Assembly (NCBI GenBank): GCA_964106915.2
Contig: OZ066926.1
DNA: 64,000 nt
Reading direction: 5' to 3' (one strand)
DNA from: Podarcis gaigeae
Lineage: Eukaryota
This document shows, piece by piece, positions 1,542 through 30,030 of this stretch (the stretch's first letter is position 1; each line of letters starts with the position of its first letter). The notes under the pieces were generated by a model that saw only the letters and a list, made by a program, of their open reading frames with translations, was not told where the DNA came from and made no database searches. Both the position numbers and the translations under genes were made by a program.

Positions 1542-2572
1542 CTGAATGTGAGGAAGCCAGGAAAGCAATTCACCCAGCAGTTTGTGTGCCCAGCTCACAC
1601 CCAGCTGTCCATGTTGCCAGTCATTGAAGCACCCACTACCAGGATCTCTCTGGCCTCTGGGAAAATATCCTCAGAACGTGAAACAACTTCTTTGTTGAGG
1701 CAGGCCTGCTCAGAGAGCTAAAGCTGACAAGTGTTTTAATATGCACTTTACTTTTATAAAGTTATATTTATTAAACTGTGAAGGGATTTTTTTACAACTA
1801 AGCGGTATACACATTCAATTTTTTTAAAAAATGACAGCTGAAGAGCACTAATTCGTGTGGGGGTTGCAGCCATAAGAACACATGTTCTGCTAGACAGTAC
1901 AGGGCTAATATACACAGAGTTCTTGAACTTCCTAAAGAGGACTCTCTGTGTGTGGTCATTTCCTTTGGCTCCTCTGGGCAGGAACTCTGTAAAAAAGTTG
2001 ACAATTATTTATATTTCCTTCTGCCTGTGACAAGACTCTCTCTTTCTACCATGCCTTCAAGCTGAGCAGACCTGTGTGGTTGAGGCTTCTACTTTCAGTC
2101 ATGTTTGCTAAGACTACTGCAATTTTATTGTAACTTAGAAGTATTTTTCTGCATACTATACTACTTTTTCTGTATATGCTGCTTGCATGGAAATGTAAGC
2201 AAAGCCTTCTCCAATTATCTTACTAAAATGTGTGGTGCATTCTCTGCAATGGAGGTGAAGAGGAGGAAGGTAAGCAGACTGCAATTGAAAGGGATAGAAT
2301 GGTGGGTTTGCTTAATTCCTAAACTTGAATAAACTGCAAAACTCATAGGTGCTTGCGAAAAAGGCTTCACAGCTAGATTTCATTTGCATTTCTCCCACAC
2401 ACTTAGAAGAGGAGGTTTAGATCAAAATCTACAGATTTAATCCTCAATCCATCTCCCATAGTTTGGCCATCCCTGATGTATCACTTTCCTCCTTCCGGCT
2501 CCTTAGCCCCCAAGTAGGGATGATCTGAATTGCTGTCCATGTTGGGGGTGGGCTGCCAGCATTCCTCTTTTC

Positions 2573-2858
2573 TTACCACTTCCTGCAATGCCTGAGGAGC
2601 CTCTCTGCCTCATCCCTGCAGTTGATGGTTCTGAGCACATCAGCTGTCACCTGCACGGCATAATCCCCTGTATAGAAATTCAGCAGAAGCCGGCTCAGGT
2701 CCACCACATCTGCCTTCTCCAATGTCCCTCGGGGGATGTTGTCACAGCCTTTCTTAACAGGAAACTCATGGAGCTTGAGCTTGAACTTCTTGAGTTCGTT
2801 CTCTTGCAAGTTCTCCAGGGTGGACACCAGGCTGTCTGTGATGGTCTTCTCCATCCAT
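2573..2858 (-). CDS. Gene A C-terminal PYD exon
   Basis: LVSTLENLQENELKKFKLKLHEFPVKKGCDNIPRGTLEKADVVDLSRLLLNFY is an ASC-like PYD. Its phase-2 acceptor is reached through the 70-nt exon 4235-4166. Confidence 0.92.
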
Positions 2859-5800
2859 CTGCATTGTCACCCCCCAGAGGCAGGAAAAAACAGACATGCT
2901 CTCAAGATTCAAAATGGACCACCCATCTAAAAAGGTTGGTGACTCCTGCTTTAAATACTGTGATAAAGGATTGTAAGCTACATTTATGAAAGCAAATGTA
3001 AGTATGCCTTAAAAAACAGTAACAAAAGTAGAGTATTCATTGTGGGATGTGAAACACAAGAGCAGTCAAGTACAACATTCCTAGAGTGAACATGTTTACA
3101 CATGGGGAGGGATGTTTGTCCAGCCAGCAGGTAAACTTCCTGTTTCCTTCTGGGCTGGGACAGACTTCCTCTGCATGTGACTAGAGGTGGGTGTGGCCTC
3201 ACCTGTGCAGGTAATGACAAAGGCACAGAGCAGGGCAGCCATCTCTCTCTCTTTCTCCACATGCATCAAAGAAACAGCATCTACTAAGCCAAAGATGCCC
3301 TCTTGGCTTCCAGCCAAGAGAGGACAGAGGGACTGTCTTCTTAAGAGATAGACTCCAAATGTATATTACTTCATTAAGCCTAAGTCTGCCTTCTGGGATC
3401 TGATTGTGAACAGAATGTGAGTAAACTCTTTTTATACTTTTGTAAAAGACTGTGTCGTCCCTTCTATTTTATGAGGGAATAAGGGGAAATTACCAGAATA
3501 GTTATTATAGAGGCTTTAGGGAGCGTAAGCAAATGCAGCCGCTGCAAACTTAAAATAAAGGGGAATGTTACTCTGCTGAAATTGTGGAACTTGTTAACAC
3601 AAGTTAGATAAGTATATAATCAGACAATATATCCTCTCCTGCATCCCTGAATATTCCCACATTCATCCCATCATACCTTTATGGATTAAAATAAATCAAG
3701 AATATAATGTTACATTTATTTCATTAAAACATTTTTCTGGCTGGCTTTGTACCACATCAAAATTACCATAACTAGTGGGATACAGTTCAAGGCATTGTTA
3801 AAGAGCAGAGTACAGGTAAATGTTGGCTGGGGTTAGGTGAATCTGCAGTGGTAGATAAAAGCTCCAGCCATAAAGAAATTGGTGCTCCCTCCCTCCCCAT
3901 TTGGTGGAATCTCTCTTTCTCTTTTTCTCTTTCTCTTTCTGTTTCTCTTTACAGGAACACACATATCTGTCTTCAGAAGTGTTCACCATACATGCAGTTT
4001 CCCCGAGAATTTATCTGAATTCTGAGTAACGACTTTCAGAGCCTCCCCATTGCTTCCCATCCTCCAATACCTGTTGCCCACCTGAGGCAGCTGCTTCACT
4101 GTGCCTAATGGCAAGATGGGTCTTTTTTGGTGAAATGGAGTGGGGGAGAAAGGGTTAAGCCTTACCTGCCTTCCACATTATGTCCAGGGTTAGTTCTGCT
4201 GAATGATGCATTGGTTGGTGTGCAGCCACAAGCCCCTGGGAAGGTGAAGAGGGAGGGAATACATACAAAGCAGGCAGGGACAACGAATAAAATGAGCATG
4301 GTGGGAGATGAGCCCAAGACTTCCAAATCACATCCAAGTTTCTCTTGGATATGTTAAGAACTGATACTCAATTTAATATGGAAAAGCTCACACTGTAAAA
4401 CTTCAAGAGAGGAATTCAATGTCAGCAAAAGCAGTTCTGCTACTGTTTCATCAGCCCTCTGTGCTCCTATTGGGAGGGAAGTGGGATACACATACATGCA
4501 GAGAAATAATTAAAACCTGCTCACCTTGTGCTGGGTGTGGAATAGGAGAATCCATCTCCTCTGAAATTAACTCTCCTGAAATAGAATAAGAAAGAGGCAG
4601 TCAAAGAGGGAACGTGACCCGTGGTCCTTTTCCATCCTGCCTCCTAAGATATGACCCAACCTCACGATCTTCCCTTGATTAAAACTCACTTCGTTTCAGA
4701 TGTGCCTCCCAAACAATTTCAGTCGTGCCCTTCTTCATCAGGTAGAAGTTGAACTTGTCTTGCATTTGCTCAGCAGACAGTTCTACGTACTGCTGCAGTT
4801 TCTCTGCATCCAGGTATTGAAACTTCAGTTCCTGTGGGAAAGAATGAAACCTCTGTAACTGGCCATTGCAAGGAAGACAAATTAAAGGGTGAAGAGGGAT
4901 TCTGGTTGAATTTCTCCCATTCTCAGACTTCACAGTTTGACTCTTCCCCATCATATTTGTCTCACCTCAGGATAGACTGTGACATCCTCTGAAGCCTTCA
5001 AAGATACCTGAGAACCAATCATCAGCGGTTTCAGGGTCACAGGGGGTTTCTCTATTCTCTTTGAATTTACTTCACGCTTTTCGACCGCCTGGGAATGGCA
5101 AATAAATTCACTTTTTAGATATGCAAAGAGGGAACCAAACTTCTTGAAGACCGGATCCCTACGACCTTCTTGACACCGTAACACCAGCTAAGGCAGGAAT
5201 GGGGAACCTGATGGCCTCCAGATGTTGTTGGACTCAAATCAACCCCAACCAGCTTGGGTCAGGGATGATGGATGCTGTAGTCCAAGAGCATCGGCAGATA
5301 CTCAGATTCCACATCTGCAGTATGAAGAAAATTAAACCACTATGGCACCAGAAACTACACTACTACAAGAGCTCTTGAACTGGGCAGCCTGAACTAAGCC
5401 TGAGCAAGTTGGCAGAGAGGTATCAGCAATCCTGCGTCCACCTGCATCTTGTCTTGATGAGACCATGCAGGAAACCACAGAAGCCATAAAACCTCAATAT
5501 TTGAATGAAGCATCAGAAGGCAATTTTAAGAAAAGTTCAGATTGAGAAGGTAATATGATAATGTGCTTTATCTCCCATGTGCCAACACTGCAAATCAGGA
5601 AGAATGTTTTTCCTCAAGAGTTCTTACAGACAGTTCATAATTATCAAGCTGATTCCTTAATAAACCAAGCTGAATTTGTTCATCAATAAATCTGAAGGAA
5701 TAAGCCTTATTTATTTCAGTGAAGGCTTCCAAGAAAATGTGCTTAGAATTTTGTTTTTACAAGTCAGTGACAACAACGTTTGTTTACAGAACCAGACAGG

Positions 5801-8800
5801 ACATTTGGCCTCTAGCAAGCAGGCTGGCTAACAAAGGAAAAAGGTGTATTTCAATATTGCAAACTTCACTTTGAAACAAGAGTGTTGGTGAGAAGCTAAG
5901 TCACCCGGTGGAGGGCAACTGTGAATCTTCTCTCTAGTAGCATGTTGATGTTGGCTAGAAGTTTGGTAAAACAGATCAAGTCCAACGAAGATAAGTACAG
6001 TATAGTTCATGCACCCTAATGAATAATTTTGCATAGGTATTCTCTCATGGTTAGAGTGATCAAGCAAAAGATCCAGGTAATCTGCAACACCAATCAAAGT
6101 TGGAGATTCCAAGTTACCTTTACTATAGAAGGGTCATTTGGCAGGAGGTACAGGTGAAATGTTGGTGTTTCCAGTCGAAGTCTCTGATAGAGCAGTACGA
6201 CAGTGTTGATCTTTTGCTTAAACCACTTTTTGAAAACGACTCCAAGGGAAGAGAACTTGGGGTTTTCCAACACAGCATGGTGAGGCTCCACTCTGTCTGG
6301 CTTCTCCAGCCTCATCTCCCCTTCCACAAAATGTGCAATGAAGACATGGGAACTGTCGTCACCTGTAAAGACAAGCATGTTAGCAGTGGGAAAGTGAAAC
6401 TTAACCCCCCCCCCCATTTCAGGTCCTGCCAACCTAGCAGTTCGAAGCACGTCAAGTGCAAGTAGATAAATAGGTACTGCTCCAGCAGGAAGGTAAACAG
6501 CGTTTCCATGCGCTGCTCTGGTTTTCCAGAAGCGGCTTAGTCATGCCGGCCACATGACCCAGAAAAACTGTCTGTGGACAAATGCCGGCTCCCTCAGCCA
6601 GTAAAGTGAGATGAGCGCTGCAACCTCAGAGTTGTCTGAGACTGGACTTAATTGTCAAGGGTCCTTTACCTTATTATTTCACGCAAACGTTTGTTTTCCT
6701 ATTGTCTTTTAAGAGGTTTATAATGTTGTTCCACAGGACAATATGATCACATGGCAGCTTACAACAGAATGCAAATCAAAGAAAATAATAAAACAGCACA
6801 GTTGAAACATTTTGAAAAATTACAAAAGACTGGAAAGCCAGCACTACTGATTTCTAGACTCCACAATGCAGGCCCCATAGCATTCTGGAAACGTCAATGG
6901 AAGTTATTCCTGTTTCGGATTCCTCCTATTATGGTTATAATGCTGGGAACTTTCCCCCTGCCATACCTTCAAGACACAAGAAGTGAGGGACGTGAATGGC
7001 GGCCACAGCTTCTGCTGCATCTACTTTAATGTTGAGCAGAGGGCCAGCGACATGCAACTCCTCAGTGGTCTGTTCTTCCAGGTGCTTAGGCCATGAATCA
7101 AAGTGGTATGTTATGGTCACAGCTTCTTTCACTTCACATATGAGATCCGTATCTCCACAACGGAAGGAGCCAGCCTCAGTGGTGCACACTCTGAATGGCA
7201 CAAAGAGAAAGATGAAAGGGGAATCAGGTTGAACATTGTATTTGAGAGCAGAAGCAGTAAAGGAGTCTAGAAATGTTGTGAAATGCTGAAAAGCTGCAGA
7301 ATCATTTAGCATGCGGAATCACTGAATCCTGAGGATGAGTCATTCTTTGTATAAATATTGTATCTGTTTGGAGGCAGACTCAGCGTCCCTGGTGTCTATG
7401 TCTGCAGTGACTCTCTGAGCTTTGTGAAGCCTGTGCATGCTGAAGACTCTGTGTGACTCTAACTCTGTGTATGCTCTAAAGCTAACTTAATCTTCTGTTC
7501 ACTATGCTGTGAGAACCAGTGTGGTGTTGTGGTAAGAACGATGTACTCGTGATCTGGTGAACCGGGTTCACGCCCCCGCTTCTCTGGGTGACCTTGGGCT
7601 AGTCACACTTTGAAGTCTCTCAGTCTCACCTCACAGAGTGTTTGTTGTGGGCGAGGAAGGGAAAGGAGAATGTTAGCCGCTTTGAGACTCCTTAAAGGGA
7701 GTGAATGGCAGGATATTTATTTTAGCTCAGTAAAACTTTTATTCTTTTACTGAAGAAGATTCTGCATTATTAATTTACGCTGCATGTCAAACATGAATTG
7801 GGAGAACTTCCACACCTGGTCTAATTGATATTTTTGCAGGAGATGCTTCACACACTGAGTTATGGAGGTAAAATATTGACAGAAGGACATCTCCTGGTCA
7901 AGCATCACTCAACTGAAGCACAACTGCTATGAGGCCACCCAAAAATTTAAAAAGGTGGTTTTTCTTATACAGAGAAGGTGTTTTTAAAATGGTGCCTTCA
8001 TGCAGAGCAAAGCAAGCTGGTGAAAGTAACTACTCATCTTCTGTTTACCCTTGTGTTGATGATACGAGATCATCAGGGAAATTTCTCATACTCGGTAACC
8101 ACGGCAAGAGTTCAGTAACCCATGCACCCATTTAGCTCTAAACACCAGACCAAAAAGCACACTGCTTTAAAGTGTTTGGGAGGGAAACCATGCAGGCCAC
8201 CTTGAACTCCTTGGAAGAAATATGGGGTATAACTTAAATCATATCAATCAAATATTTTTAAGTGTGCGAATGTTCAGGGGTGCAGGAGATGGTATATTGT
8301 GAGATTATATCCTAATCCAATTTGTGCTAGCAAGTTCCCAAAATATCAGCAGAGTTTATAACATTCCCCTTTAAATTCGCAACGGTAACGTCTGCACAGG
8401 TTCGCTAGAACCTCTATAATAATTACTCTGGTAATTTCCCCTTTTGTTCCCTCTTAAAATACAAGACACAACACAGTCTTTATAAAAGTATAAAGGAGTT
8501 TACTCACGTTCTGTTCACAATATGATCCCAGAAGGCAGACACACTTAAAAAGGTTACATACATTCAGAATCTATCTTATAGCAAGATAGTCCTATCCTCC
8601 TCTCTTGGCTGAGAGCCAAGAGGGCATGTTACTCCTTCAGAAGATGAATATGAGAGAGAGAGATGGCTGCCTGCCTTGTGCTTTTATCATTTACCTGCAC
8701 AGGTGAGCCCACACCCACCTCTGGTCACATGTGGAGGAAGTCCGTCGCCAGGAAGTTTACCTGCTTGCTGGACAGACATCCCTCCCCATGTTTTAACATG

Positions 8801-11800
8801 TACACTCTAGGAATGTTGTCATTGACTGCTCCTGTGTTTACATCCCACATAAAGAAGGAGAAACAACAGTTCCTCAAAAAAAATGCAGAGTTCCATATTT
8901 TTCACTCTCTTGGAAATAATAAGCAACAGCAATGCTCCAAGGTAATGATTTTCCAACTGTATTTGAGGGACCCAGGAGTTCCTCAGTGAAGAGATCAGGA
9001 CTGGTGGGTAAGCTTCCTTCAGAGAGAATTTGCCCACCATGGCCAACTGTTCATTGCAATATGCAAAACATACTGTAGATGTACTCTGTGTATGTTTTAG
9101 GGAGCACCACCACATCTGATGACTGTGAGACCCACTGAAACCAGATGTGCTCTGTGGAACAATTAAATGTAAAAACCGTTCCCTGAATGGAAAAGGTTTT
9201 TAAATGTCTGATGGAGAGATCACTCACCTGTATGCTTCGTTGCCCCTTTCTGAGTCCCAAACCACCTCTGGCTCTATTGGGCCAGCTGCCTTGAGTGGAG
9301 TTTGATCCAAATCTGTAAAAGGAAGACAATTATTTGCCTGATGACTGTTGCAAGGAGGAAGTTAGGTGAACTGCCCTTGAAGTTTAAGAACTCGAAGTCA
9401 AACTCACCATGCATTGCAGATAGCAGAATCAGAATGGTACCTGGATGTGCCATTTCTACACATTCCAGGAACCTGCAACAAGATTGCTCCCCTCTTTCCT
9501 GGATTATACTCAGCAATTTTTCACTTTTTAAAATTTTCAACATTTCGCAAATGTCTCTGTATTCTTTCAGAGTGATGACATAGAAATAGTATAGCACATC
9601 TACAAAATGTTCAATATCCGGTTCAAGAATTTCCATTAATTGTTTTCTTCCCTTGCAGATCATCTCATTACTAGAGATTGTGGATCTTTCCAATGACCTG
9701 TGGCAGAAATATTTATTTTATTTAGGTGACAGAAGGCGGGGAGAGGAGAATTAGAACATAGTTAGGATGCAGACTGCTCCCTTACCATAAATGCCAATGA
9801 GGGTCCTTTGGCCAACCCACCAATAATTTTCTTCTGGGGACACAACCCCTCAATATTTTCTCCCCACCACTGCCCACCCACCTGCCTTCCCATCTCCCTC
9901 CCTTGGTTTGCTGTCTACCCCCAGCCAAGCATCACTCTCTGTTTCTGGCTTTCCTCCAGGAGGAGCAAAGTGGGACATAGCAGTGGGGGGGATGGTGGAT
10001 GTGAGTGTGTGGTTTGTGTGTGTCTGTCTCCTACCTGGCTTCCCATCCCTCCATCAATTGCTAGCTCCCTCTCTCTGTGTGGCACCCTCTTGCAGTGGGG
10101 ACAGCCTCCACCCAACCTACCATGGTGGCAGCCTGAGCAAAGTTGAGCATGCCTGGCCAGTGGGTGATGACAGGCATGGGCAAGGCAGATGCCTGGCTGA
10201 GAGGAGACAGCTGACGTAGGGACAGAGGGAGGCAGAGCAAGCACCCTGGCCGTGCTGCAAACACCAACACCGACTGCCTACACTCAATGCAGCTCCCTGG
10301 GTGCACACTGGCCTGACACCAGACTTAGTGCAGCAAGGGGGTGGGGGCAGGGGAAGTAGGCAGGCCTGCCCCACCCATATTTTGTTTAAGTTGGCGCCAC
10401 TGTCTCTCACACGGAATCAAACTGTTGGCCCACCTAAATTCATAGTATCAACATGTTATGATGAAACTATGCTCATTTGTCATATTATGATGAAATTGCT
10501 TTTGTAGTGTTTGAAATTGGCTTATGGGTTGCCCTCTAGCCTCCCCCCACCTCAGGATTGCCTCAAGTTTATGTGAACCATACCACTCCTTGCTGTGGTC
10601 CTTTCCTTCAACCCTCCCCCAATCTTTGGGTTCCCTGCCCCCTAGGGGTTCTTTCCCCCCAAACAAATTCCAATCCTTACCGTGCCCTCCCATCTTGTCC
10701 CTCCATGGGGCGGGAGTGAGATGATAATCCCAGCCAAGCTATCCTGACTCTGAGCCATTCACTGATGACCACTTTGTCCCCCAAGCAACTGGAAAGTTCC
10801 CTGCCCTCAGACCAGCTTAATGTGACATACAGGGCTGGAGGGTTAAAGGTCTTTCAGATACAAAGAGTCATTTGCTGGGGAGGCTCTAGCTCTTGGTTTC
10901 CTGCTTCAAGCAGCAGCTGGACTAGAATAGATGGCCCACTGAGTTCCCTCCAAGTCTGTTATTCTATGACACAGGCAGGATACCTGCAGCCAGTGGACCA
11001 CAGGTAGCCCTCGGATGCACTCCCTGGGGCCTTCCAAGGCCTATGGAGCCCTGCCTCCATCCCCCAGCTGCTAAGCCTTTAAAGTATCTGGCAACCTGCC
11101 AGCATCAGTGGAAAATATACACTTTGGTTTTCCTGCCCAATGGTTGACGCAGAAAGTGGGAAAGGTCCAAAATAGCAATTTTCAAAGTATTTTTTCCCCA
11201 AGCAGGGGCACACACACACATTTATTAAATTAGTGCTAAAGCATTTTTGTTTCAAGCAGGAAAGCTTGTATTGTTTTAAGATTAATGGATTTTACGTTTG
11301 TTTTGGATTGGAAGGGTTAGCTGAGAGGGGAAAACATTGGTATAATTGTAGCTAAAGTGGTGGCTTCAGTCAATTATATAAGTACAGAAATTACCCTTTG
11401 GTGGCTTTTTCTGATGGAACCAGTTCCTCCAGAGCTTGATTAATTTTTGACGACAAGAATTCAGCTGACCGGTGCCTTGAAACATGCATTTTGCAAAGTC
11501 GCTCTGCTGCTAGATATTGAGAAAGTGAGTGCATGTCAACAGCTTTACTGAGTCCTTGCCGCTTTCTACATATTTTTAACCATTATTTGGCACTGACACA
11601 CAAATTTGGCATTGTATTGCATGAAAGACAGCATTGGTATAGAAAGGATTCACTTCCGTCTCATACAGGTCAGTCTGCCATTTTGGGTGACCTAAATCTT
11701 AATGTGGAATGCATACTTCTTTCCAACACTATTTTGGCTGTTAATGTCATGGGTGACATACTGACGACACAAAGGCAGACAATACCAACAAGAAAGAAAA

Positions 11801-14800: not shown

Positions 14801-16675
14801 CAATGAATTGTATAAACTTGATAAGAAAAATGGTTTTGCGACAGAAAAATCCAAATTGGAAACGGAATTGTTAGATACCAATGTTAAAAATCTCTCTAAA
14901 ATGTATAATTTATTGTAGGAATGTTATACAAAGGATGAACAAGTTAAATCTGTGATGATTGATTGGGCAAGAGATGTTGGACACAATATAATGTTGGATG
15001 ATTGGGAAAAGCTATGTAAGAAAGAGGTTGAGTTTACTGCATGTACTGTATTAAAATAAAATATTATGAAAATGATGTATAGATGGTACCCAGTAAAATT
15101 AGCAAAGATCTACCATACAAATGATAATCTTTGTTGGAAATGTAAAGAAAAAGAAGGTACTTTTTACCATATGTGGTGGACATGTCCTAAGGTGAAAGAC
15201 TTCTGGGGAAAGATTTATAATGAGTTGAAAAAAATGTTGAAAAATACATTTATTAAGAAACCAGACGCCTTTCTACTTGGTATAATAGGATTGGAATTGC
15301 CCCCAAAAGATGTTAGACTGTTTGTTTATGCCACTGCAGCGGCAAGATTTTTATTAGCCAAAAATTGGAAGTCGCAAGAAATACCAACAATAGAAGATTA
15401 GCAGATGAAGATGTTGGATTTATTGACTGGAAGAATCTGCGACCAGAAAGAAGAGGAGACACAAGAGGATTGGAAGAAATTTAAAGAATATTTAGCTAAA
15501 TATTGTAATATAAGATAACTAGAAAATTCTTGGAAGCAACGAATACGCTTAGGGGTAGAATAAGAATATGTGTTAGTAAATATTAAGGATTAGAATATTA
15601 ATAAAGGAGAAGAGGTTAGTAAATGTTAGGAGTCAATATTATTAGAAATATGAATTTGGAGAACTGTCATACAGGTGATATAATGAAATTCAGTTAGAGG
15701 GGATGCGAGGAAGTCAGTTATAATGTTATGAGAATTAAATATCTGAAGAAATATTTTGTGTGTGTTTAGCTTACTTTATTGTAAAGTGTTTTTCTTTGTT
15801 GTGTGTTTTGTAATGTCTTTGTTGTCATAAATGTGGAAAAACAATTTAAAAAATGGGGGGGGGGAGAGAAAATAATTAGAGAGCTTGTCTTGTGTGGGAG
15901 AGCCTATCGACCTGACAACCCATAGTATATGTGAAAAGGATCTAGGGGTCTTAGTGGACTACAAGCTTGACATAAGTCAACAGTGTGATACAGCAGCATA
16001 AAAAAGCTAATGCTATTCTAGGCTGAATCAACAGAATTATATTGTCCAGATCAAGGGAAATAATAGTATGACTTTATTTTGCCTTGGTCAAACTATGTCT
16101 GGAATACTGTGTCCTGTTCTTGGCACCACAACTTAAGAAGGATGTTGACAAGGTGGAACGTTGCAGAGGGGGGCAAGATGATCAAGGGTCTGGAAACTAA
16201 GCCTTATGAGGAGCGCTTGAAGTAGCTGGGTGTGTTTAGCCTGGAAAAGAGGAGACTGAGAGGAGATATGATAGCCATCTTCAAGTATCTTATGGGCTGT
16301 CACATGCAGGAGGGAGCATGCTTGTTTTCTCCTGCTCTTGAGGGTAGGACACGAACCAATGGCTTCAAGTTACAAGAATGGAGATTACAAGAATGGAGAT
16401 TATGACTAAATACCAGGAAGAACTTTCTGACAGTAAGAGCTGTTCAGCAGTGCAACTGATTCCCTTGGGACGTTATAGACTCTCCTTCCTTGAAGGTTTA
16501 TCAGCAGAGGTTCTAATGAATCATCCACTTGCTTCCTATAAATTGAAAAGGGAATGTGCTCTGCTATTTATCACTAGCGTGAGTGAGGGGGGATAATATC
16601 AAAACAATAGATCATCTCCAACCTTCCTTAACATTCCCACAATGTCAAGGAGACATACACAGATTGGCACATAGG

Positions 16676-16714
<39 letters not shown>

Positions 16715-18454
16715 CCTGCTCAAGAAGCAGTCCCGTCAGACTTACCCAGTGTTCTCCCTTCTAAGTTCCTTACCTTTCCTGGTGAAACAAGAGCGACATT
16801 CTGGCACTGGCTCACAGTCAAAGGCTTTCATCACCTCTGAGGCCACTTCCACAGCATAATCCTCATCGCAGTATGCAAGAAGCAGTTCTGTGAGCTCCCA
16901 AGCATTTGCTTCAACCAGCAGCTCCCTGGGGATACTGACATAGCCTTCCTTGACGGGGAACTTGCTGAGTTTGACCTTGAACTTCTTCAGATCTGACTCC
17001 TTCAATGTATTCAGTGTGGCCAGCAGGCATAATTGTGTAATCTGCACTGTGGTGATTATTGATGTTAGTAGAAGTATTGAACAGAAAAATCCAGCACTCC
17101 TACATTCCCCTTCTCTTCCTGTTGGAGCACAATGAACAGGCAGCACTTTCAGACTGGACTAAGTAGGGAAGGGCTGTGGATTTGTAGTAGATCACATGCA
17201 TGCAAAGGATCCCAGGTTTAATCCCTGGAGGATCCAGAAAGGGCTTGGAAAGATTCCTGCCTAAATCCCTGGAACAAACTAGATGGACCCAGTGGCCCAA
17301 TGTGTCCTAAGGCAGCTTCCCATCCTTCTAGCCTCTCAGGTGATTGAAGGAGCTCAGCCTGGCCCAGAAGAGAGAAACTGATCCAGGAGGGTTTGAAGAC
17401 TCTCTTAACTTACAGGCCTCTTCTTAACACTTTGCAGGCGTCTACGTTTATTTCCCACCCTGTTTCTGATGTTCCTTCTTCCCTGGTGGGGAGCGGATGC
17501 CGTGTAGTGTTTTGCCTCAGGTGCTAACATGTCTTGGGCCAGCCCTGGTTTAGATGGAGGGCAGAGGGGTGTGGGAAGATGTCACCTCACTTTACACAGG
17601 GAAGATTTACATCCATCATTCCACTCACTTTCACCCTGGACCTCCACCCCCCCACTCCCGGAATTCGGGTCTTTTCTCCTGCTCTGGAGGCTAGGACTCC
17701 AGGCAATGGCTTCAAGTTGCAAGAAAGGAGATTCCAGCTAAACATTTGGAAAAAGCTTCTGACAGTAAGAGCTGTTCAGCAGTGGAACAGACTCCCACAA
17801 GAGGTGGTGGACTCTCCTTGGAGATTTTAAAGAAGAGGTTGGCCATCTGTAATGGATGCTTTAGCTGAAATCTCTAAATTGCAGATGTCCGTTGCGGTCC
17901 CTTCCAACTCTTAGATTCCATGATTCTTTGGAATGTTGCCCAGGAGGATATGCGACTCTCCTGCTCGAAAGGTTTCCCCACCCAAGGAGGAAGGCAACCA
18001 TGGGAAGGAGCTGAGCTCTCGGTACTGAGAGAACCCGCGAGGCGTCAGCACCATCAGTCGGATCGAGCCCCCGCCCCGCTCCCAGTCCCTTACTTTGCCA
18101 GGTGATACCCGAGGGATCGTCCACCGGCGGATTGTAGTCCATCGCCTTCAGCACCAGGGCCGTCACCTCCACAGCATAAGCCTCACCGTAGTAGCTGAAC
18201 AGCAGGTCTACGAGCTGCAAAGGCATGGCTTCCTTGAGCAACTCCTCGGAGATTCTTCTGACGCCCTCCTTGACCGGGAATCTGAGCAGTTCGCGCTGGA
18301 ATTTCTCCCACTCTCCCTCCCCCTCCTTCAACTCCAAAAAGATGTCCAGAAGGAGGGAACTGGCGGATTGCAGATTCGGGTTCTCAGGATGTAAGAAAAT
18401 GAGGCCACGCGACAGATTTGTGGAAAAGAAGAACTTCGTCCCCATTGCGCTCAT
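2573..18454 (-). CDS. Gene A: PYD-PYD-CARD-FIIND-PYD protein (NLRP1/CARD8-related, no NACHT/LRR), ~725 aa, 11 coding exons
   Basis: GT-AG exons 18454-18094, 17046-16746, 9697-9408, 9312-9228, 7190-6967, 6362-6118, 5088-4966, 4831-4690, 4575-4525, 4235-4166, 2858-2573. Phases chain without a stop; total 2178 nt. The join 16746->9697 across a 7-kb TE-rich intron is the least certain. Confidence 0.75.
3041..3661 (+). mobile_element. Solo LTR
   Basis: TGTGGGA...TCCCACA termini with 5-bp TSD TTCAT. Strand is given as reference orientation only. Confidence 0.8.
4690..5088 (-). CDS. Gene A UPA exons (5088-4966, 4831-4690)
   Basis: [16 protein letters not shown] and ELKFQYLD...EIVWEAHLK match the UPA C-terminal half. 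Confidence 0.9.
6118..6362 (-). CDS. Gene A FIIND autoproteolysis exon (ZU5/UPA boundary)
   Basis: [29 protein letters not shown]|SSLG...FHLYLLPND, equivalent to NLRP1 AHF...ENPSF|SPLG...FHLYLIP. Confidence 0.93.
6420..6672 (+). mobile_element. Sauria SINE, 5'-truncated
   Basis: cctgccaacctagcagttcgaa...gtcctttacc body and tail. Confidence 0.8.
6967..7190 (-). CDS. Gene A FIIND ZU5 exon
   Basis: EAGSFRCGDTDL...[12 protein letters not shown]...VAGPLLNIK...AIHVPHFLCL matches the NLRP1/CARD8 ZU5 pattern; 224 nt, as in paralogs B and C. Confidence 0.92.
7513..7715 (+). mobile_element. tRNA-derived squamate SINE (Squam3-like)
   Basis: A/B-box-like head followed by gggtgaccttgggctagtcac...ccgctttgagactcct. 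Confidence 0.6.
8298..8849 (-). mobile_element. Same LTR family, inverted copy
   Basis: Reverse-complement similarity to 3041-3661. Confidence 0.7.
9408..9697 (-). CDS. Gene A CARD-like exon upstream of FIIND
   Basis: RKQLMEILEPDIEHFVDVLYYFYVITLKEY...KLLSIIQERGEQSCCRFLECV fits a CARD helix pattern. cag|G acceptor, G|gtgag donor; paralogous exon at 47686-47391. Confidence 0.75.
11790..15850 (+). mobile_element. Two degraded L1-clade LINE ORF2 fragments with small MITE insertions
   Basis: NYRPISLLNMDYKI, KAFADD, LSLWGRISVIKM and CWKC...GTFYHMWWTCP motifs; many stops. Confidence 0.88.
15925..16500 (+). mobile_element. CR1 LINE fragment
   Basis: gaaaaggatctaggggtcttagtggac...tttagcctggaaaagaggagactgagaggagatatgata. 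Confidence 0.8.
16746..17046 (-). CDS. Gene A exon 2: PYD
   Basis: LLATLNTLKESDLKKFKVKLSKFPVKEGYVSIPRELLVEANAWELTELLLAYCDEDYAVEVASEVMKAFDC. Phase-1 acceptor; donors at 16773 and 16745. Confidence 0.8.
17670..17925 (+). mobile_element. CR1 3' fragment
   Basis: NGFKLQERRFQLNI...LTVRAVQQWNRLP ending in gattccatgattct. Confidence 0.75.
18094..18454 (-). CDS. Gene A exon 1: divergent PYD
   Basis: LLLDIFLELKEGEGEWEKFQRELLRFPVKEGVRRISEELLKEA...LVDLLFSYYGEAYAVEVTALVLKAM. CpG-rich 5' region, ATGs at 18454 and 18445, donor A|gtaagg. Confidence 0.8.
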
Positions 18455-19130
18455 TCTCCGCCAGCCACAGCCCAGCCAAAGCCTCGGGAAAACTCGAGAA
18501 AAACTCAGAAGATCTGGAGACTGTGCCAAGGCAGAGAGGCAGGTGGGCCCGATCCCCGGGCCAACTCGCCGGGAAAGAGAGAGGCCTGGCCGGTGGGCAG
18601 CAGGAAACCCGCTCCGAGAGCCCCGTCTCTTGCCCTGCGCGTCGCCTTCTTTTCCCTTTGGCGAGGAAACTCTGGGAGATCCTTCCCTCCGGCAGCAGCA
18701 GGAGACTGGAGGGCGGAGAGGGCGGAAGGGGCGTCTTTCCAGCAGCTCACCTTTCGGGCTCCCCAGCCCAGCCCTGCGTTGGAAGAACTTGGCTGAGCGG
18801 TTCTGGGGGAAGACCTCCGAAGGCAGCCCTCGCAGGATTTGCAGGGGCGCTTGGGCTGCAAGACGGGGGTGAAGAGAGCCGGCTCTTGCTCTCCCTTTGC
18901 TCAGGATCTGAAGCCGGGAGGAGCACCCCACCCACAGAAAAGGAACCTGTGATTTTGTTCAGGGTGCTGGGACTTGTAGATCTCTCAGAGGTGAACTGTG
19001 AAGCCCAGGATTCTTCCTGGGCGTGGGCTTGAAATGCGTGCCTTCTGGCACTTGGGCTGCGCTCTCGGAGGCTAGTTTCTAAGGGCGCAGCTGAGGAGAC
19101 TGGCACAGAAAAACCCACCGGAACATTTCA

Positions 19131-19175
<45 letters not shown>

Positions 19176-21213
19176 CAGCGTGGCAATCGAGCGCACTGGA
19201 ATATAACAAACCTAGGCAGTGAATGCTTTTATTTTTTAACTGCATGAGGCATAATCCTGCCACAGAAACTTTCATTTACTTGCAGCGTGGCAGCCAATAT
19301 ATTAAACCTGGTGGGTGGGGGTCAGGAGTACCAACTTGAGAAACACATTGGGGGGGGGCGGAGCGGGAGAAGCCCAGCCCTGCATAATGGATCACATGAG
19401 GCGATGCACACACTGTCAGTCTGCATTTCTTAGTGCAGAGACTATTGATATGATGTGTAGAGATCTTTCCTATTCTACTTAATTCAAGAGGGTTCTGGAA
19501 GCTTCTCTGTGTGAAAGAAACAAGCAGAAGTTGAAGTCACCATGATTACTATTTCTCTCCTTTTTGAATGTTTGGTTATCTGCTCATCCAAGTCTTCAAT
19601 CTGGTAAGGTCACTGCTGTTTCTTTCTCCTACAATTTGTACCCATAACCCTCAATCTGCTTTTCATGCTCCATGTCGTGGATTTTTTCACAAATGTACAC
19701 ATCCTTCATATATAATGCTACTCCTCCACCCTTCCTGGTTGGTCAATCCCTACAGTCCAGTCATAAGTCTCATCCCACCTGGTTTCAGTAATGCCTACCA
19801 GGTCGTATTTGCGATCCTGGATAAAAAGCTCCAGTTCATCTTGTTTGTTTCCCATGCTTTGTGCATTATGGAGAGACAAATGAAACCATGAGTTGTTCTC
19901 TGCACTGCTTCCTTCCGGCAGTTTCTTGCCCTTTAGCAGGTTTCTAGAGCATCACCTCAGTTTCCAGTGACTAAACTAATATCTTTAGTCAGGAGATACT
20001 TCAGCTGAGATTCCTGCATTGCAGGGGGTTGGACTAGATTACCCTTGGAGCCCCTTAAACTCCAAGATTCTATGATTCTAACCAGATTCACCCACCCAAT
20101 GCTGCAGATTTTGCATACAAAAGGGTTGCAACAGGTAACCGGCCCACTTATCGCAGTAATTAATATCCAGATTCTGCACCCACAACTTGTCTGTAGACAA
20201 GTCTCAGACCTAAATGCAGGACCTCCGCCTTCTCCCTGAAATAATGTGAGGAGGGGAGAGAGGAGTATCATCAGCATCTTCTAGGGCTGGAGGAAATTTT
20301 CTAGGCCATCTGGCCTGATGCAGAAAATCCAGCCCTACAGCATTTTCAACAGGTGGCTGTCAAGAGTCTGCCTGAAGACCTCCAGCAGGGGTGCCAACTT
20401 GAAAAAATATGAACAGGTTGCAGATTTAACATATATAAGAGAACAAGAAGAATATATCACAATATGTGGTACACACAAACCTTTTGAATGTCAATGACTG
20501 TCAACTTGGGGGGGTCACATATTTTATGAGGGGGCAAAGGGTCCTTGGCCACTAGGAACTGGCTCCTATGACCTCCAATGAGGGAGCTCCCCACCCCAGG
20601 AATTGGCTCCATGAATCCATATGAGAAATTTCCTAATAAAACCCTTCCAGCAGTTTGGATGGATCTCTGCAGGAGCCCACAAGCCCAGTGCTTATATACG
20701 GATTCATCCATGCCTGATCTTTCTCCACCTTGCTGCCTACAAGGAAGAGATCACTGGCCCAGCCTTTGTTTACAGTAACCTGCCTGAAATCCTCATGCTA
20801 CCAGGAAACTTTATTAGCTGGGTTGGTAGGCATAAAACTAAAGTTCAAAGTACAATGTAGGGCAGGTGTAAATCATAGAAATATAAAGTCCTTGTGCCCT
20901 GGGAAGATGCTTGCAGAAACACTTTGGAGGTGCCTATTGAAGATCTACTGATGCTGAGGAATCACCATGCTATAATCAGTCAGGGTGATTTCAGAGGGAC
21001 AGACATGCTACAAAGGGGGACATACAAGCCTGGGTTTAGAAACCAAGCACCCCTATTTCTCTTTCTGTGTTCCACCACATTATATTTAACTCAACTTAGA
21101 ATTCGTGTTGTTATGGTTATAACATTGTTTTCCAACTAGTGTGCCAGGGCACATTGAGAAACATTCAGGGGAGCCTTTCTTTCATTAACTTGCAACCCTG
21201 ATCTTCCTGCATT

Positions 21214-21269
<56 letters not shown>

Positions 21270-21539
21270 ATTCTGAGGAACATTCAGGGGAGCTGGCAAC
21301 TTTAACTTGCAACACATTATCTTCCAAAAATAAAACAGTGACAAAAAAAGAGGGAAACAATTTTGCATGACTGTTTATATTCTGAAAATCTCCCTCCTCC
21401 AAAAAAAATCATCCCCAGCTTCAGTAACTAACAGTTCCTTAGTTCTACATAGAGGGATTGAGAAATACAATAAGGTAGCAAAGTAGCTTGATGGTGATGG
21501 TGGGTGGGTGTCCACCCTATAAAGAGGGTTTTAAAAATA

Positions 21540-21770
21540 CAGTGGTACCTCAGGTTAAGAACTTAATTCATCCTGGAGGTCTGTTCTTATCCTGAAACTG
21601 TTCTTAACCTGAAGCACCACTTTAGTTAATGGGGCCTCCTTCTGCTGTGCTGCTGATACGCCGCTGCGTGATTTCTGTTCTCATCCTGAAGCAAAGTTCT
21701 TAACCCGAGGTAATATTTCTGGGTTAGTGGAGTCTGTAACCTGAAGCGTATGTAACCCGAGGTACCACTG
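21540..21770. mobile_element. Tc1/mariner (Tigger-like) MITE
   Basis: TIR CAGTGGTACCTC...GAGGTACCACTG flanked by TA. Confidence 0.85.
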
Positions 21771-22291
21771 TAACCCTGAAAGTGAGCAGTGTCTTTTGTG
21801 TTTCTCACTCCTTCTACCCTCAACATCACTCTCCCCCCAGGCAACCCCCTCCTCCTTAACAGTCAGCCAGCTTTATGGGGACAAGGAGAATGTTGCAGGA
21901 AAGGATCGTGTCTGCATGGTGTCCAGTGCTGTGTGTTTCTTGCTTTCCTTCTGCATGGTAACAAAATTTTTTTTGCTTCTGATCCTAATCTTGTTTTGCC
22001 CTCTCCATGCCCCCCACCCAACCAAAGGGAAGCTGGGCTGCCATGTGGAGTGCATCAGCTCAGCCCTGCAGAGCAGTGACGTTTCTTGGCTTCCCACCGA
22101 CACATGCCTCCCCACTTACATGTGTGCCAAAAATAGCGCTGAAAAGGGGTGGGACGGAATGGAGAGATTCCCCAGTATGTGTGCCTTGTAACAGAACCCC
22201 AGCGTCAGTGGCTCCCAAAGGGGAGCTGCAGAAAGGATGAGTGGCTGGACAAGGAAGCTGTGGACTCAAAAAGGTTGAAAACCACTAGGAG

Positions 22292-22621
22292 ATGAGAGAC
22301 ACAAGAAGTGAGGAAAGTGTATGGAACTCCTTGGACCAGCAACAAGGAATTGTCTTCCATTCGTGTAGAGCAGGCATAGGCAAACTTGGCCCTCCAGATG
22401 TTTTGGGGCTACAATTCCCACCATCTCTGACCACTGGTCCTATTGGCTAGGGATGATGAGAGTTGTAGTGCCCAAACATCTGGAGGGCCGAGTTTGCCTA
22501 TGCCTGGTGTAGGTGCTTAGACCATGAATCAAAGTGGTATGTTATGATCACAGATCCTCTCATCTCACATTGGAGATCAGTATCGCCACAAAGTAAGGAG
22601 TCAGCCTCTGTGGAGCACACT
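22292..22621 (-). pseudogene. Second copy of the orphan ZU5 exon, interrupted by a MITE
   Basis: Duplicate of 1358-1541 with a 136-bp insertion at 22371-22506. Confidence 0.75.
22371..22506. mobile_element. hAT-like MITE
   Basis: TIR CAGGCATAGGCAAACT/AGTTTGCCTATGCCTG; absent from the paralogous site near 1430. Confidence 0.85.
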
Positions 22622-22885
22622 CTGAATGTGAGGAAGCCAGGAAAGCAATTCACCCAGCAGTCTGTGTGCCCAGCTCACACCCAGCTGTCCATGTTGCCAG
22701 TCATTGAAGCACCCACTACCAGGATCTCTCTGGCCTCTGGGAAAATATCCTCAGAATGTGAAACAACTTATTTGTTGAGGCAGGCCTGCTCAGAGAGCTA
22801 AAGCTGACAAGTGTTTTAATGTGCACTTTATTTTATAAATAAAATGCCTTGAAAGGGGTCTTGCCTTCTGCCTTCCCTTGGGGCC

Positions 22886-23166
22886 TCATTGCCCTTCCAG
22901 GTCTTTCACGAGATGTGGGTTTTTGGCCTTCAGAGCCTCATACAGCATTTCCTTGCACCGGAGGTCCCAGCTTGGCACAAGCTTGTAGAGCTCTCGCATC
23001 TTGTCTGGGTTAGTTTCCTTGGCAGTGATTCTTTGGTATTGCTCCTCACTGAGGACGGAGCCATACAATCTATCCAGCACCGGTTCCGCTGGGGTGGTCC
23101 GTTGGATTAGTGCCTCCCTGTGCTGCTCGATGAAGTGCACGTTGGAAGAGTTTGGAAACTCCGGCC
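22886..23166 (-). CDS. Gene B C-terminal CARD exon (ASC/NLRP1-type CARD)
   Basis: [81 protein letters not shown]. Confidence 0.95.
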
Positions 23167-26100
23167 CTGCCAGGAAAGAGAAAAAGAACGGAAATCTTGC
23201 TACAGGTTCACAGTGCAGGCTTAAGACTGGTTGCCTAACTCATTCCCTCCTCCCCCATGCCCTGGGAATTGTAGTTCCATGAGGGGAGGGATTGTGAACA
23301 GAGCATTACTAGTAGCTCATCTGCCTACAGTTCCCAGAATTCTTTGGGCAAAGCCATAACTGTTGAGGAAGTATAAAACTGAAATACAGTAAGTGAGAGC
23401 AGTTGCAAGGGAGCCAAGGCTGGGGCCAGCCCTACCATTAGGGAGAGTGAGGTGGCATCATAATATGGGTTATCATGAAACAACAGCACATTATCAGATA
23501 ATTAATTTCACATAGTATTATACTCAGCTTTATATTTTATTGCTTGAAAGCCCAGGAATTGATAGCTCCTACATTGTAGTGGGTTGGACTAGATGAGACT
23601 TGGAATCCCTCCAAATACTATGCTTCTGTTATTGTTGTTATAATTACTGAACCCAGCTTTCTCCCACAGGGAGAGAAGAGACCATTTCGCTCACTATCCA
23701 AAAGCCATGAAAACTTTGCTCACAAGGTCTCTGTCCTTGGAAGAAGACGAGCCTATGGAACATTGTCTCACAGATTTATGTATTATGCTTGCAGTATCAC
23801 TTCATAACAAATGACAATAAAAGCAAGTAACAGTTAATATTTAAAAGAACTGACACTCACTCTTTTGAAAAGAACTGACTGTAAAACTTAGAGTGAGGAG
23901 TTCAAGGTCAGCAAAACCAGTTCTGCTACTGTTTCATCAGCCCTCTGTGCTCCTATTGGAAGGAAAGTGGGATACAAATACATGCAGAGAAATAATTAAA
24001 ACCTCCTCACCTTGTGCTGGGTGTGGAAAAGGAGAATCCATCTCCTCTGAAATGAACTCTCCTGAAATAGAATAAGAAAGAGGCAGTCAAAGAGGGAACG
24101 TGACCCGTGGTCCTTTTCCATCCTGCCTCCTAAGATATGACCCAACCTCACGATCTTCCCTTGCAGATAGGTAGCCGTGTTGGTCTGCCATAGTCAAAAC
24201 AAAATAAAAAAATTCCTTCCAGTAGCACCTTAAAGACCAACTAAGTTAGTTCTAGGTATGAGCTTTCGTGTGCATGCACACGAATCTGAAGAAGTGTGCA
24301 TGCACACGAAAACTCATACCTAGAACTAACTTAGTTGGTCTTTAATGTGCTACTGGAAGGAATTTTTTTTATTTTGTTTTGATCTTCCCTTGATTAAAAC
24401 TCACTTTTTTTCAAATGCGCCTTCCAGACAATTTCAGGTGTGCCCTTCTTCATCAGGCAGAAGAAGAACTCGCCTTGCATTTGCTCAGCAGACAGCTCCA
24501 CGTACTGCTGCAGTTTCTCTGCATCCAGGTATTGAAACTCCAGTTCCTGTGGGAAAGAATGAAACCTCTGTAAGTGTGAATCTGGCTTAGCCCAACCCAC
24601 CATTCCAAGGGAGTCAAATAAAAGGGTGAAGGGGGATTCTGGTTGAATTTCTCCCATTCTCAGGCTTCACCATCTGGGCTCTGCAAAACCTTTCATCATA
24701 TTTGTCTCACCTCAGGACAGACTGTGACATTCTTTGAAAACTTCAAAGAGACCTGAGAGCCAGTTGTGAGAGGTCTCAGCGTCACAGGGGGTTTCTCTAT
24801 TCTCTTTGAATTTTCTTCACTGTCATTGACCGCCTGGGAAAGACAAATAAAGTCACATTTGAGATACAGGAGAGGAAGCCAAGACTAGATCCCTACAACT
24901 TTCTTGGCATTGTTACACCAGCTAAGGCAGGAATGGGGAACCTGATGCCCTCCAGTCAGCAAGAGTCAGGGCTGATGGGTTTTGTAGTCCAGTAACATCT
25001 GCAGAGACACAGATTCTCCATCTGCAATATGAAGAAAATTAAAGCACATGGCACCAGAAACTAAAATGTAAGGAGGAGATTCCCTGGCCTCATGGGGAAC
25101 TCAAGCCAGGGCTCTTGGACTGGACATCCTGGTGGCCGAGAGGTAACAGCAATCCTGGGTCCACCTGCATCTTGATGAGTCCATGCAGGAAACCACAGAA
25201 GCCATGAATCCCATGTGCCAACACTGCAAATGAAGAAGGATGTTCTTCCTCAAAAGTTCATTTAGATAGCTTGTATGAATTAAGCAGAATTTGCTCATCA
25301 CTAAATACGTTTATTCTGGAGGAAGCCTGATTTCAGTGAATGCTTCCGGAAGAAATCCATTGGGACTCACAATTGTTTCACAATTCAGTGACAACACCGT
25401 TGTTTGGAGAACCAGACAGGGAATTTGGGCTTTATCAAGCAGGTTGTTTAAGGAATGAAAAAGGTGTATTTCAATTTTGGAAAAATCACATTAAAGCAAC
25501 AGTGTTGATGAGAAGAAAAGTAACCCAGCAGAGGGCAACTTGTTAATTTTCTCTCTACTGGCATGTTGAATAGAACTGATCAAGTCCAACAATTGTGCAT
25601 AGTCGGGGTTAATATGATCAAGTAAATGATCCAGGCAATTGGAATACCAGAGTTGGAGGTTCCTGGTTACCTTTATTATCGAAAGGTCATTGGGTAGGAG
25701 GTACAGGTGAAACGTTGGTGTTTCCAGTCGAAGGCTCTGATAGAGCAGCACAACAGTGTTGATCTTCAGCTTAAACCGCTTTTTGAAAAGGACTCCAAGG
25801 GAAGAGAACTTGGGGTTCTCCAACACAGCATGGTGAGGCTCCACTCTGTCTGGTTTCTCCAGCCTCATCCCCCCTTCGACAAAATGTGCAATGTAGACAT
25901 GGGAACTATCTTTACCTGAACAGGAGCCCAAAGGAAACATAGACAAACATGTTACAAGTGGGAAAGTGGAAAAAAATCACCATCACTTAACCCTCACCCT
26001 CCTTGTATCATGCAAGTATTTATTTTCTCATCATCATTTAAGAGGTCTATAGCATTGTTTCACAGTACTGTATGTTCTCAGGGTAAAGGTAAGGGGACCC

Positions 26101-28368: not shown

Positions 28369-29025
28369 CGCGCTTCTTCCCCGCCTCCCCCAGCCCAGCC
28401 AAATCCTCGGCCAGCGAAAAACCCAGATCCGGAGACTGTGCCAAGGCAGAGAGGCAGGAGAGCCAGACTCTGGTGCCCAACTCGCGGCGCCTGATGCCCC
28501 GGAGGAGAGATGCCTGGCCCGAGGGCAGCGGGAAACCCGCCGCTTGCTGCTCCCTTTGGCGAGGAAACCCTTTGAGATGCTTCCCTCCGTCCGCGGCAGG
28601 AGACTCGAGGGCGGGGCGAGCGCAAGAGGCGTCTTTCCCGGGAGCTCTCGCTCTCTTCCCCAGCAGGTTCTGAAGCAGGGAGGAGCGGCAAGGAGTTGGA
28701 GCAGGAAAACGTGCGAGCGTGAGAGAAGAACCTGCTCCTCCTTTGGGAATTTCAAAAACACACAACCCTCCCCCTCAAAAAAAAGCAATCCTTGAAGTTG
28801 CTTGGGGGAGAGCTGGATGAGAGTGAAGCAGCCAAACAGCTGCTCATCGAGGAGGAGCACAGAAAGGGCGCCTGCAGGACCCAGGTATTACAATGAACAA
28901 TTATTTTCTTACCCAGAACCATCTCTTTGTGTATGATTGCAACAGGTAAACTCTAATCTCTATGCACCAGCCAAATGTTGCATATGAAAGGGTTGCAACA
29001 GGTAACGGACCCACTTTTGCCAGTA

Positions 29026-29265: not shown

Positions 29266-29724
29266 TAATTTATATTCCATTTCTGCACCCACATCCTGTC
29301 TGCTGACAGCCAAGAATGCAGGACCTTCGCATCCTCCCTGAAATAATGTGAGGAGGGGAGAGAGAAGTATCCACAGCATCCTACAGAGCTGGAGGGAGTT
29401 TTGTATGCCATCTGGCCTGATGCAGGAAATCTAGCCATACAGCATGTTCAGCAGGTGGCTGTCAAGATTCTGCCTGAAGACTTTCAAATGAGGGAGCTCC
29501 TCACCCCAGGAATTGGCTCCATGAAACCACATGAGAAATTTCCAGACAAAACTCTTCCAGCAGTTTCATGCAAATGTTAAGCTGCATCAGAGACAAGATG
29601 GATCTCTGCAGGAACCCACAAACCCAAAGGTCATATATGGATTCATCCATGTCAGTTATTTCTCCACCTTCCTGCCTACAGGTAAAAATAAAAGGTTAAT
29701 TAACCATTGGATGGTTAAGTTCAG

Positions 29725-30030
29725 TCAAAGGTGACTAAGGGGTTGTGGCGCTCATATTGCTACAGGCCAAGGGAGCTGGTGTTTGTCTGTAGACAGCTTT
29801 TCGGATCATGTGGCCAGCATGACTAAACTGCTTCTGGCGCAATGGAACACTGTGACAGAAGCCAGAGTGCACGGAAATGCTGTCTACCTTCCCATCACAG
29901 TGATACCTATTTATCTACTTGCACTGGCATGCTTTCGAACTGCTAGATTGACAGAAGCTGGGACAGGGCAATGGGAGCTCACTTGGATCGCAAGCCCAAG
30001 AGACTCAATGGTTCAGACCACAGTGCCACC
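29725..30030 (-). mobile_element. Older Sauria SINE
   Basis: Diverged match to the other copies. Confidence 0.7.

Follow-up and report, generated by a model that had tools for sequence, protein, structure and literature searches.

The window analysed here is a stretch of 64,000 nt from contig OZ066926.1 of the Podarcis gaigeae genome assembly GCA_964106915.2, and it contains part of a tandem array of genes encoding FIIND proteins without a NACHT domain, which follow each other in the order D, C, B, A when read in gene orientation. Genes A and B, both located on the minus strand, are collinear on either side of their tail exons and differ in the death-fold domain that stands directly C-terminal of the UPA subdomain, namely a pyrin domain (PYD) in A and a CARD in B. 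The comparison of the two genes points to the replacement of a PYD-type block by a CARD-type block in gene B. No runs of N are present in the window, which is 91-96% identical at the DNA level to a chromosome segment of P. muralis (L001). The closest database proteins come from lacertids (Podarcis raffonei, P. muralis, P. lilfordi, Zootoca and Lacerta), and L001, a locus of Zootoca (L002) and a third locus (L003) served as comparison loci. Domains were assigned by a Pfam scan in which the exons were searched singly and not as a joined coding sequence, and frame continuity was deduced by phase arithmetic at the splice sites only.

Gene A has the domain order PYD-PYD-CARD-FIIND-PYD. It starts with an ATG at position 18454 in the first PYD exon (18454 to about 18094), which is followed by a second PYD exon (about 17046 to 16774), a linker exon (about 11509 to 11395), a CARD exon recognized by Pfam (9697-9408) and a short exon (9312-9228); this N-terminal exon block spans 9227-18454. 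The ZU5-UPA region of the FIIND is specified by four exons (7190-6967, 6362-6118, 5088-4966 and 4831-4690) that were delimited by Pfam (PF13553, PF23679) and splice sites and that are 84-93% identical to the Podarcis orthologues in tblastn searches. The second of these exons carries the cleavage motif ENPKF-SSLG. The 51-nt exon E10 (4575-4525), ending with HPAQ-G and followed by the phase-1 donor GTGAGC, is the last exon that gene A has in common with gene B. Beyond it lie a 70-nt adapter exon (4235-4166), entered in phase 1 and left in phase 2, and the C-terminal PYD exon (2858-2576), entered in phase 2. The tail PYD was detected with PF02758 at 2576-2866 of the minus strand (E=1.3e-23), is 91-94% identical to its Podarcis orthologues and has the PYDs of POP1 and ASC as nearest solved structures (E about 1e-16). 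A small terminal exon (1987-1950) contributes only the last base of the stop codon in P. gaigeae. A T at position 2578, within the site 2573-2581, closes the PYD exon with a stop, with or without splicing to the small terminal exon, and gene A therefore lacks the 10-residue end GVPAQRSQRK of its P. raffonei orthologue (P0155), a protein of PYD-PYD-CARD-FIIND-PYD architecture.

Gene B consists of a start exon (28368-28327), a short exon (28120-28056), four FIIND exons (26862-26639, 25915-25671, 24833-24711 and 24546-24405), the 51-nt exon E7 (24061-24011), which is the homologue of E10 and has the phase-1 donor GTGAGG, and a C-terminal CARD exon (23166-22886) that is entered in phase 1 and terminates with a stop codon at 22888-22886. 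The CARD was recognized by PF00619 at 22889-23239 of the minus strand (E=2.6e-20), with the CARDs of NLRP1 and ASC as nearest solved structures (E about 1e-25 to 1e-26), and a paralogue of this exon was not found elsewhere in the window at E<1e-3. Gene B contains no N-terminal death-fold exons, and the counterpart of A 9278-18434 is missing. The two genes thus differ at both ends, since B is also devoid of the N-terminal PYD-PYD-CARD exons of A. The region 28357-28638 of B aligns with A 18434-18740 at 70% identity and retains an A-like promoter and start region, with the remainder of the first PYD exon and the second PYD, linker and CARD exons of A absent. Gene B accordingly appears to be an internally deleted, CARD8-like derivative.

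Both FIINDs were detected with PF13553 (E=1e-23 and 2.5e-11) and comprise ZU5-like and UPA-like subdomains. Matches of single exons to PF23679 reached E=4e-5 to 9e-5, which is below the curated cut-off, the domain being split over exons; the full-length Podarcis orthologues gave E=1e-38 to 1e-43 for PF13553 and 1e-22 to 1e-24 for PF23679. The F|S dipeptide of the motif ENPKF-SSLG is intact in A, B and the orthologues. Neither NACHT nor LRR domains were detected by Pfam in the mapped exons of A and B or in the Podarcis orthologues. The ZU5b exon of gene C (40690-40959) reads ENPNL-SPRG, whereas the C-like genes of P. muralis and Zootoca have NF-S, and this F-to-L change at the self-cleavage site may weaken processing of the gene C product.

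The borders of the exchanged segment were determined by a self-BLASTN comparison of the window and subsequent fine alignments. Downstream of the tails, the 3' flank of A (10-1760) aligns with the 3' flank of B (19077-22839) at 80-95% identity, and upstream A 4356-9278 aligns with B 23845-28106 at 72-93%, with E-values down to 1e-110 to 1e-160, far past chance. Between these blocks neither approach gave any alignment of the A-specific interval (1761-4355), which represents the PYD-type tail cassette, with the B-specific interval (22840-23844), which represents the CARD-type tail cassette. The 5' break of homology lies 166-169 nt inside the intron that follows the 51-nt exon, and the 3' break falls within the poly(A)-signal region, at TTTATAAAA(G)TAAAGTGCA. 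All exons of A and B are open and bounded by canonical splice sites, and the tails have compatible phases, the CARD exon of B being entered in phase 1 and the 70-nt exon of A turning phase 1 into the phase 2 needed for the PYD exon. The features of an exon-shuffled cassette are consequently present, with a single intron, compatible phases and a loss of homology within that intron. These data bear out a sequence-only reading of the window, which had described A and B as collinear duplicates around a non-homologous interval, with a 70-nt exon plus PYD in A and a single phase-1 CARD exon in B, and had proposed the replacement of an exon cassette at a phase-1 intron, here the one behind the shared 51-nt exon; the breaks were found within about 10 nt of the positions it had given. 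A relic of the ZU5a exon, comprising its 5' half, is present in both 3' flanks (about 1415-1558 in A and 22504-22638 in B) and also behind the P. muralis genes B', A1' and A2'. It is probably a remnant of the first duplication of the tandem unit; a processed copy was rejected as its origin, as the acceptor-like ATTCAG is kept and the relic runs into intron-like sequence.

The same gene structures were found in an independent assembly. The P. muralis segment L001 contains B', two genes with PYD tails (A1' and A2') and a further gene with a CARD tail (A3'), all with the same junctions, and B' is annotated as a FIIND-UPA-CARD protein of 426 aa. A single alignment of 5.3 kb with 94% identity to B' crosses both breakpoints of gene B, and the A interval 1761-4355 is collinear with A1' and A2' at 87-96% identity, breakpoints included. 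In the tail region A1' and A2' (L001 9552-40700) are 98% identical to each other, and A2' has a stop two codons ahead of the end of its PYD exon; since the window contains one A copy and P. muralis two, the copy number of the array varies between close species. Moreover, DNA contigs of run X1, assembled from short reads, which may derive from the assembly's own sample, cross the A breaks at 4356 and 1760 with 0-2 differences and cover 3633-4461 with none. RNA-like contigs of two further runs (X15 and X16), in which exons are covered about ten times as deeply as introns, contain the canonical splice joints 4690|4575, 4525|4235 and 2579|1987, the last of which connects the PYD exon with the small terminal exon of gene A. 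Other contigs of these runs leave E10 of A at 4524 and enter a CARD exon reading GPQLPNSSNVH; they appear to be transcripts of a CARD-tailed paralogue of the related species from which the runs were obtained. The ratios of nonsynonymous to synonymous substitution rates (dN/dS) are in the range of 0.4-0.65 for core and tail alike in A and B.

The phylogenetic relationships of the FIINDs were analyzed with FastTree on 55 rows, the supports being local Shimodaira-Hasegawa-like values only. Gene A falls into a clade of seven rows that comprises A1', A2', A3', the Zootoca protein P0004 and the pair B and B' (support 99) and that is nested among PYD-tailed lacertid genes. The tail PYD of A groups with those of C and D in a lacertid clade (support 95) that excludes the N-terminal PYDs, as the sequence-only reading had anticipated, and genes C and D each contain a homologue of the 70-nt exon before the PYD exon (within 36860-36990 and 59340-59470). 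The tail CARDs of B, B' and A3' form a clade (support 98) inside the ASC/tail-CARD clade and apart from the N-terminal CARDs. The expectation that the FIINDs of A and B are sisters holds in part: within the window they are mutual nearest relatives (support 99), but A3 of P. muralis is nearer to A. Nor are the two FIINDs nearly the same, as had been thought, since their amino-acid identity is about 81% and their synonymous distance (dS) 0.21.

The dS values between the window and its P. muralis orthologues are 0.05-0.08, and because the orthologues share both the tails and the breakpoints, the swap is older than the split from P. muralis and was not caught in a recent state, as the sequence-only reading had supposed. 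The FIINDs of A and C differ by a dS of 0.51 and a nonsynonymous distance (dN) of 0.174, and their PYD tails by a dS of 0.53 and a dN of 0.174; the tail has diverged along with the core, and the PYD tail of A therefore appears to be the inherited state. It follows that the PYD-type block, common to C and D, would be inherited and the CARD block of B derived, so that B and not A would be the changed gene. For A and A3' the FIIND dS is 0.13, and for B and A3' it is 0.25, as compared with 0.14 in their CARD tails; at the nucleotide level B and A3' are 75-86% identical ahead of the break, and this rises to 88-96% within the cassette. Over its whole length the B cassette is 96.8% identical to that of B' and 87-91% to that of A3'. 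More than one transfer is indicated because A3, the nearer FIIND relative of A, carries the CARD cassette of B, and at least two transfers of the CARD cassette into the same 5' junction are indicated because the cassettes of B and A3 share a younger origin than the gene bodies.

Sequence identity of A and B increases towards the exchanged segment, from 72-81% in the gene body to 89% in the 500 bp that immediately precede the break, and reaches 91-94% in the 3' flank, which is about the identity seen between orthologues. The distribution of informative sites points to later gene conversion. A B-to-A conversion tract located at 4430-4697 of the minus strand covers E10 and occurs in the window lineage only; 24 of its 25 informative sites are B-like, with A-like sites on both sides, and the corresponding segments of A1' and A2' are not B-like. 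Exon E10 of A is 96.7% identical to B' versus 82% to A1' and A2'. The 3' flank is patchy, with 56 fixed differences between A and B in 1325 columns. The high identity beside the breaks is the product of later gene conversion.

In the sequence of events that best explains these data, the PYD block would be ancestral, and in B the block extending from about 170 nt inside the phase-1 intron to the poly(A)-signal region would have been replaced by a CARD block, which would also have been placed on A3, all before the split from P. muralis. Conversion would then have repeatedly homogenised the sequence bordering the non-homologous cassette on both sides. Taken together with the cleavage-release mechanism outlined below, this explanation, with a CARD block replacing a PYD block, at least two transfers and later conversion, is assigned a probability of roughly 0.72. 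Several observations weigh against it. The exon trees yield a polytomy of A, A3 and B instead of an order of events, the dS contrast between B and A3 depends on few sites and is not significant alone (Fisher p=0.19), and the outgroup Rhineura has CARD tails, which renders the deep polarity uncertain. As for the donor of the Podarcis CARD cassette, the loci L001 to L003 yielded only B', A3' and distant ASC-type exons, and the Podarcis tail CARD exon shares only about 70% identity with that of Zootoca ASC. Furthermore, runs X15 and X16 originate from a related species and were only guessed to be RNA, and the joint between the 70-nt exon (E11) and the PYD exon is not among their splice joints listed.

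The two non-homologous intervals would also be compatible with two non-overlapping deletions in an ancestor that carried FIIND, PYD and CARD in series, of which A would have lost the CARD and B the 70-nt and PYD exons. A FIIND-PYD-CARD model indeed exists in Elgaria (P0060), and both tail PYDs and tail CARDs belong to ASC-like clades. Differential loss is nevertheless improbable, since in the window and in L001, L002 and L003 the PYD tails are followed by no CARD relic and the CARD tails are preceded by no relic of a PYD or 70-nt exon, and since the A/B clade is embedded among PYD-tailed genes on the FIIND tree. The greater similarity of the B and A3 cassettes than of their bodies fits a transfer, and the Zootoca ASC cassette described below directly shows the copying of a CARD block. 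A polarity opposite to the preferred one, with a CARD-tailed ancestor of A, A3 and B and a PYD cassette regained by A from a PYD-tailed paralogue, would account for the CARD junction shared by A3 and B, and A3 groups with A by its FIIND. On the FIIND tree a single gain of the CARD followed by a regain of the PYD requires no more changes than two separate CARD gains, and the Rhineura relatives have the architecture PYD(n)-CARD-FIIND-CARD. The distance between A and C, however, is equal in PYD tail and FIIND, the tail distance between A and P0157 likewise approximates the FIIND distance with no donor known that is nearer than the gene body, and the cassette of B and A3 is younger than their bodies, so that a regained PYD is considered just as improbable as differential loss.

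An artefact, that is, an assembly chimera or a dead pseudogene copy with no biological output, was considered because tandem paralogues are prone to misassembly, because B has lost its N-terminal domains and because chimeric read-through models occur among the NCBI annotations of relatives (P0002, P0011 and P0151). This possibility is already largely refuted and is regarded as very remote: the structure recurs in the independent assembly of P. muralis, contigs bridge the breaks of A, the exons are open with canonical splice sites and dN/dS values of 0.4-0.65, and both junction types occur in RNA-like contigs of a relative. The suspicion of a chimera attached to the sequence-only reading is dispelled by the first two of these observations.

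The replacement of the PYD block by a CARD block at genes A and B has counterparts elsewhere in the family. In the Zootoca locus L002 a TRIM gene is followed by ASC, a C-like PYD-tailed gene and a CARD-tailed C-like FIIND gene. A 545-bp block of ASC, comprising the CARD exon with roughly 95 bp of intron and some 200 bp of downstream sequence, is 95.6% identical to the tail of the C-like FIIND gene located 67 kb away (L002 6232-6776 versus 73281-73824). The cassette transfer in Zootoca is much fresher than that in the window. The Zootoca model P0011 was rejected as a single C-like gene with a CARD tail, as it represents a read-through across two genes; the second of these is a real C-like FIIND gene with an ASC-type CARD. 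A neighbouring ASC gene or ASC-like copy is the likely source of such cassettes. Models of the FIIND-PYD type were found in anoles, Pogona, a skink, turtles, a frog and teleosts, and sister pairs with unlike tails recur on the FIIND tree, amounting to about 12 changes, a rough count that may be inflated by gene-model errors. The tails of A and B accordingly represent one case of recurrent tail exchange in the family and show how the output of a FIIND sensor can be rewired. Tentatively, ASC at the sauropsid PYCARD locus might serve as a parts store from which PYD and CARD exons have been repeatedly copied into the phase-1 intron behind UPA, so that one self-cleaving core would alternate between ASC-dependent output through a PYD and output driven by a CARD, with switching favoured by selection, for example as an escape from pathogen inhibitors. 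If so, a UPA-PYD fragment would be a working inflammasome seed that is so far unstudied.

The FIIND sensors NLRP1 and CARD8 are activated by degradation of the N-terminal part and restrained by DPP8/9. To our knowledge, no other FIIND sensors have been studied well, and in both of them the signal is passed on by a UPA-CARD fragment. By analogy, the FIINDs of A and B would self-cleave at the F|S dipeptide, and loss of the N-terminal part would free a fragment of UPA and tail. Gene A would free a UPA-PYD fragment that seeds ASC through PYD-PYD contacts, whereas gene B would free a UPA-CARD fragment that engages the CARD of ASC or of caspase-1. The predicted output of A is ASC nucleation and that of B engagement of ASC-CARD or caspase-1, because the PYD of A resembles those of ASC and POP1 and the CARD of B those of NLRP1 and ASC.

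Among the known systems, human CARD8 consists of a disordered N-terminus, a FIIND and a CARD, and gene B corresponds to it by about 36 residues ahead of ZU5, a ZU5-UPA region with F-S, a C-terminal CARD and the lack of NACHT and LRR domains, and the lizard relatives are named 'CARD8-like' by NCBI. Gene A differs from CARD8 by PYD-PYD-CARD ahead of the FIIND and by its PYD tail, and even the CARD of B matches NLRP1 and ASC CARDs, with no CARD8 chain at E 1e-3. NLRP1, with the order PYD-NACHT-LRR-FIIND-CARD, resembles the array genes in its FIIND and has the CARD nearest to that of B, and the same degradation logic is assumed; human and rodent NLRP1 are the top match of the FIIND exons (E 2.5e-9), with CARD8 about equal, and the similarity is distant. 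The adaptor ASC (PYCARD; PYD-CARD) is reflected in both tails, as the tail PYD of A and the tail CARD of B are ASC-like. It has no FIIND, and in the array its two domain types are used one at a time, each forming the output end of a sensor.

Tails of the PYD type have been touched upon in anoles, with a passing mention of a green anole 'CARD8' that has a C-terminal PYD (PMC11258412, Fig. 2 legend) and of a PYCARD-syntenic gene with FIIND and PYD (bioRxiv 10.1101/2025.06.19.660630). These anole genes, located at or near the PYCARD locus, share the FIIND-PYD architecture of A, C and D, and the anole protein P0015 was included in the FIIND tree. No paper using the terms 'FIIND-PYD' or 'UPA-PYD' was found in the literature searched. 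The swapped-tail pairs, the cassette borders, the gene conversion and the putative role of ASC as donor go beyond both anole papers. Closely related cores that end in a PYD in some genes and in a CARD in others, with the site of exchange narrowed down to one intron, provide a natural experiment. It raises the questions of whether UPA promotes PYD filaments as it does CARD filaments and how the choice between ASC-dependent and direct output evolves.

The present analysis also contains a warning for annotation, as the names 'CARD8-like' and 'NLRP1-like' cover at least two output types in reptiles and many read-through models. Fusions of neighbouring paralogues were recognized in NCBI models of P. 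raffonei (P0002, P0152 and P0153), P. muralis (P0151), Zootoca (P0011) and Rhineura (P0001, ASC included), and because neighbouring paralogues are fused in them, domain counts from such models exceed the real architectures. The P. raffonei 'isoforms' were considered as alternative PYD and CARD ends of one gene and rejected, as the CARD forms also switch FIIND exons; these CARD forms are read-through models of A and A3.

Several repeats lie within the array. The last large intron of gene A contains a high-copy repeat of about 620 bp (3041-3660), with further copies at 8263-8849 (inverted) and 54110-54536 and a depth of 1e4-1e5 in run X1. It is absent in P. muralis and in the contigs of organism F, which show the joint 3026|3661, and thus represents an insertion specific to the window lineage. 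The long intron of gene A includes an AT-rich stretch (12000-16000) with a G+C fraction of 0.33-0.38, a GC skew of up to 0.35 and strong strand skew; it contains internally repeated units that resemble open reading frames, and a related inverted copy is located at 44300-45900 in an intron of gene C. Finally, a repeat of about 250 bp that resembles short interspersed nuclear elements occurs in both orientations at 6420-6676, 26086-26325, 29715-29960, 32541-32785, 44741-44978 and 55069-55313, and its copies at 32532-32896 and 54958-55322 are 97% identical.

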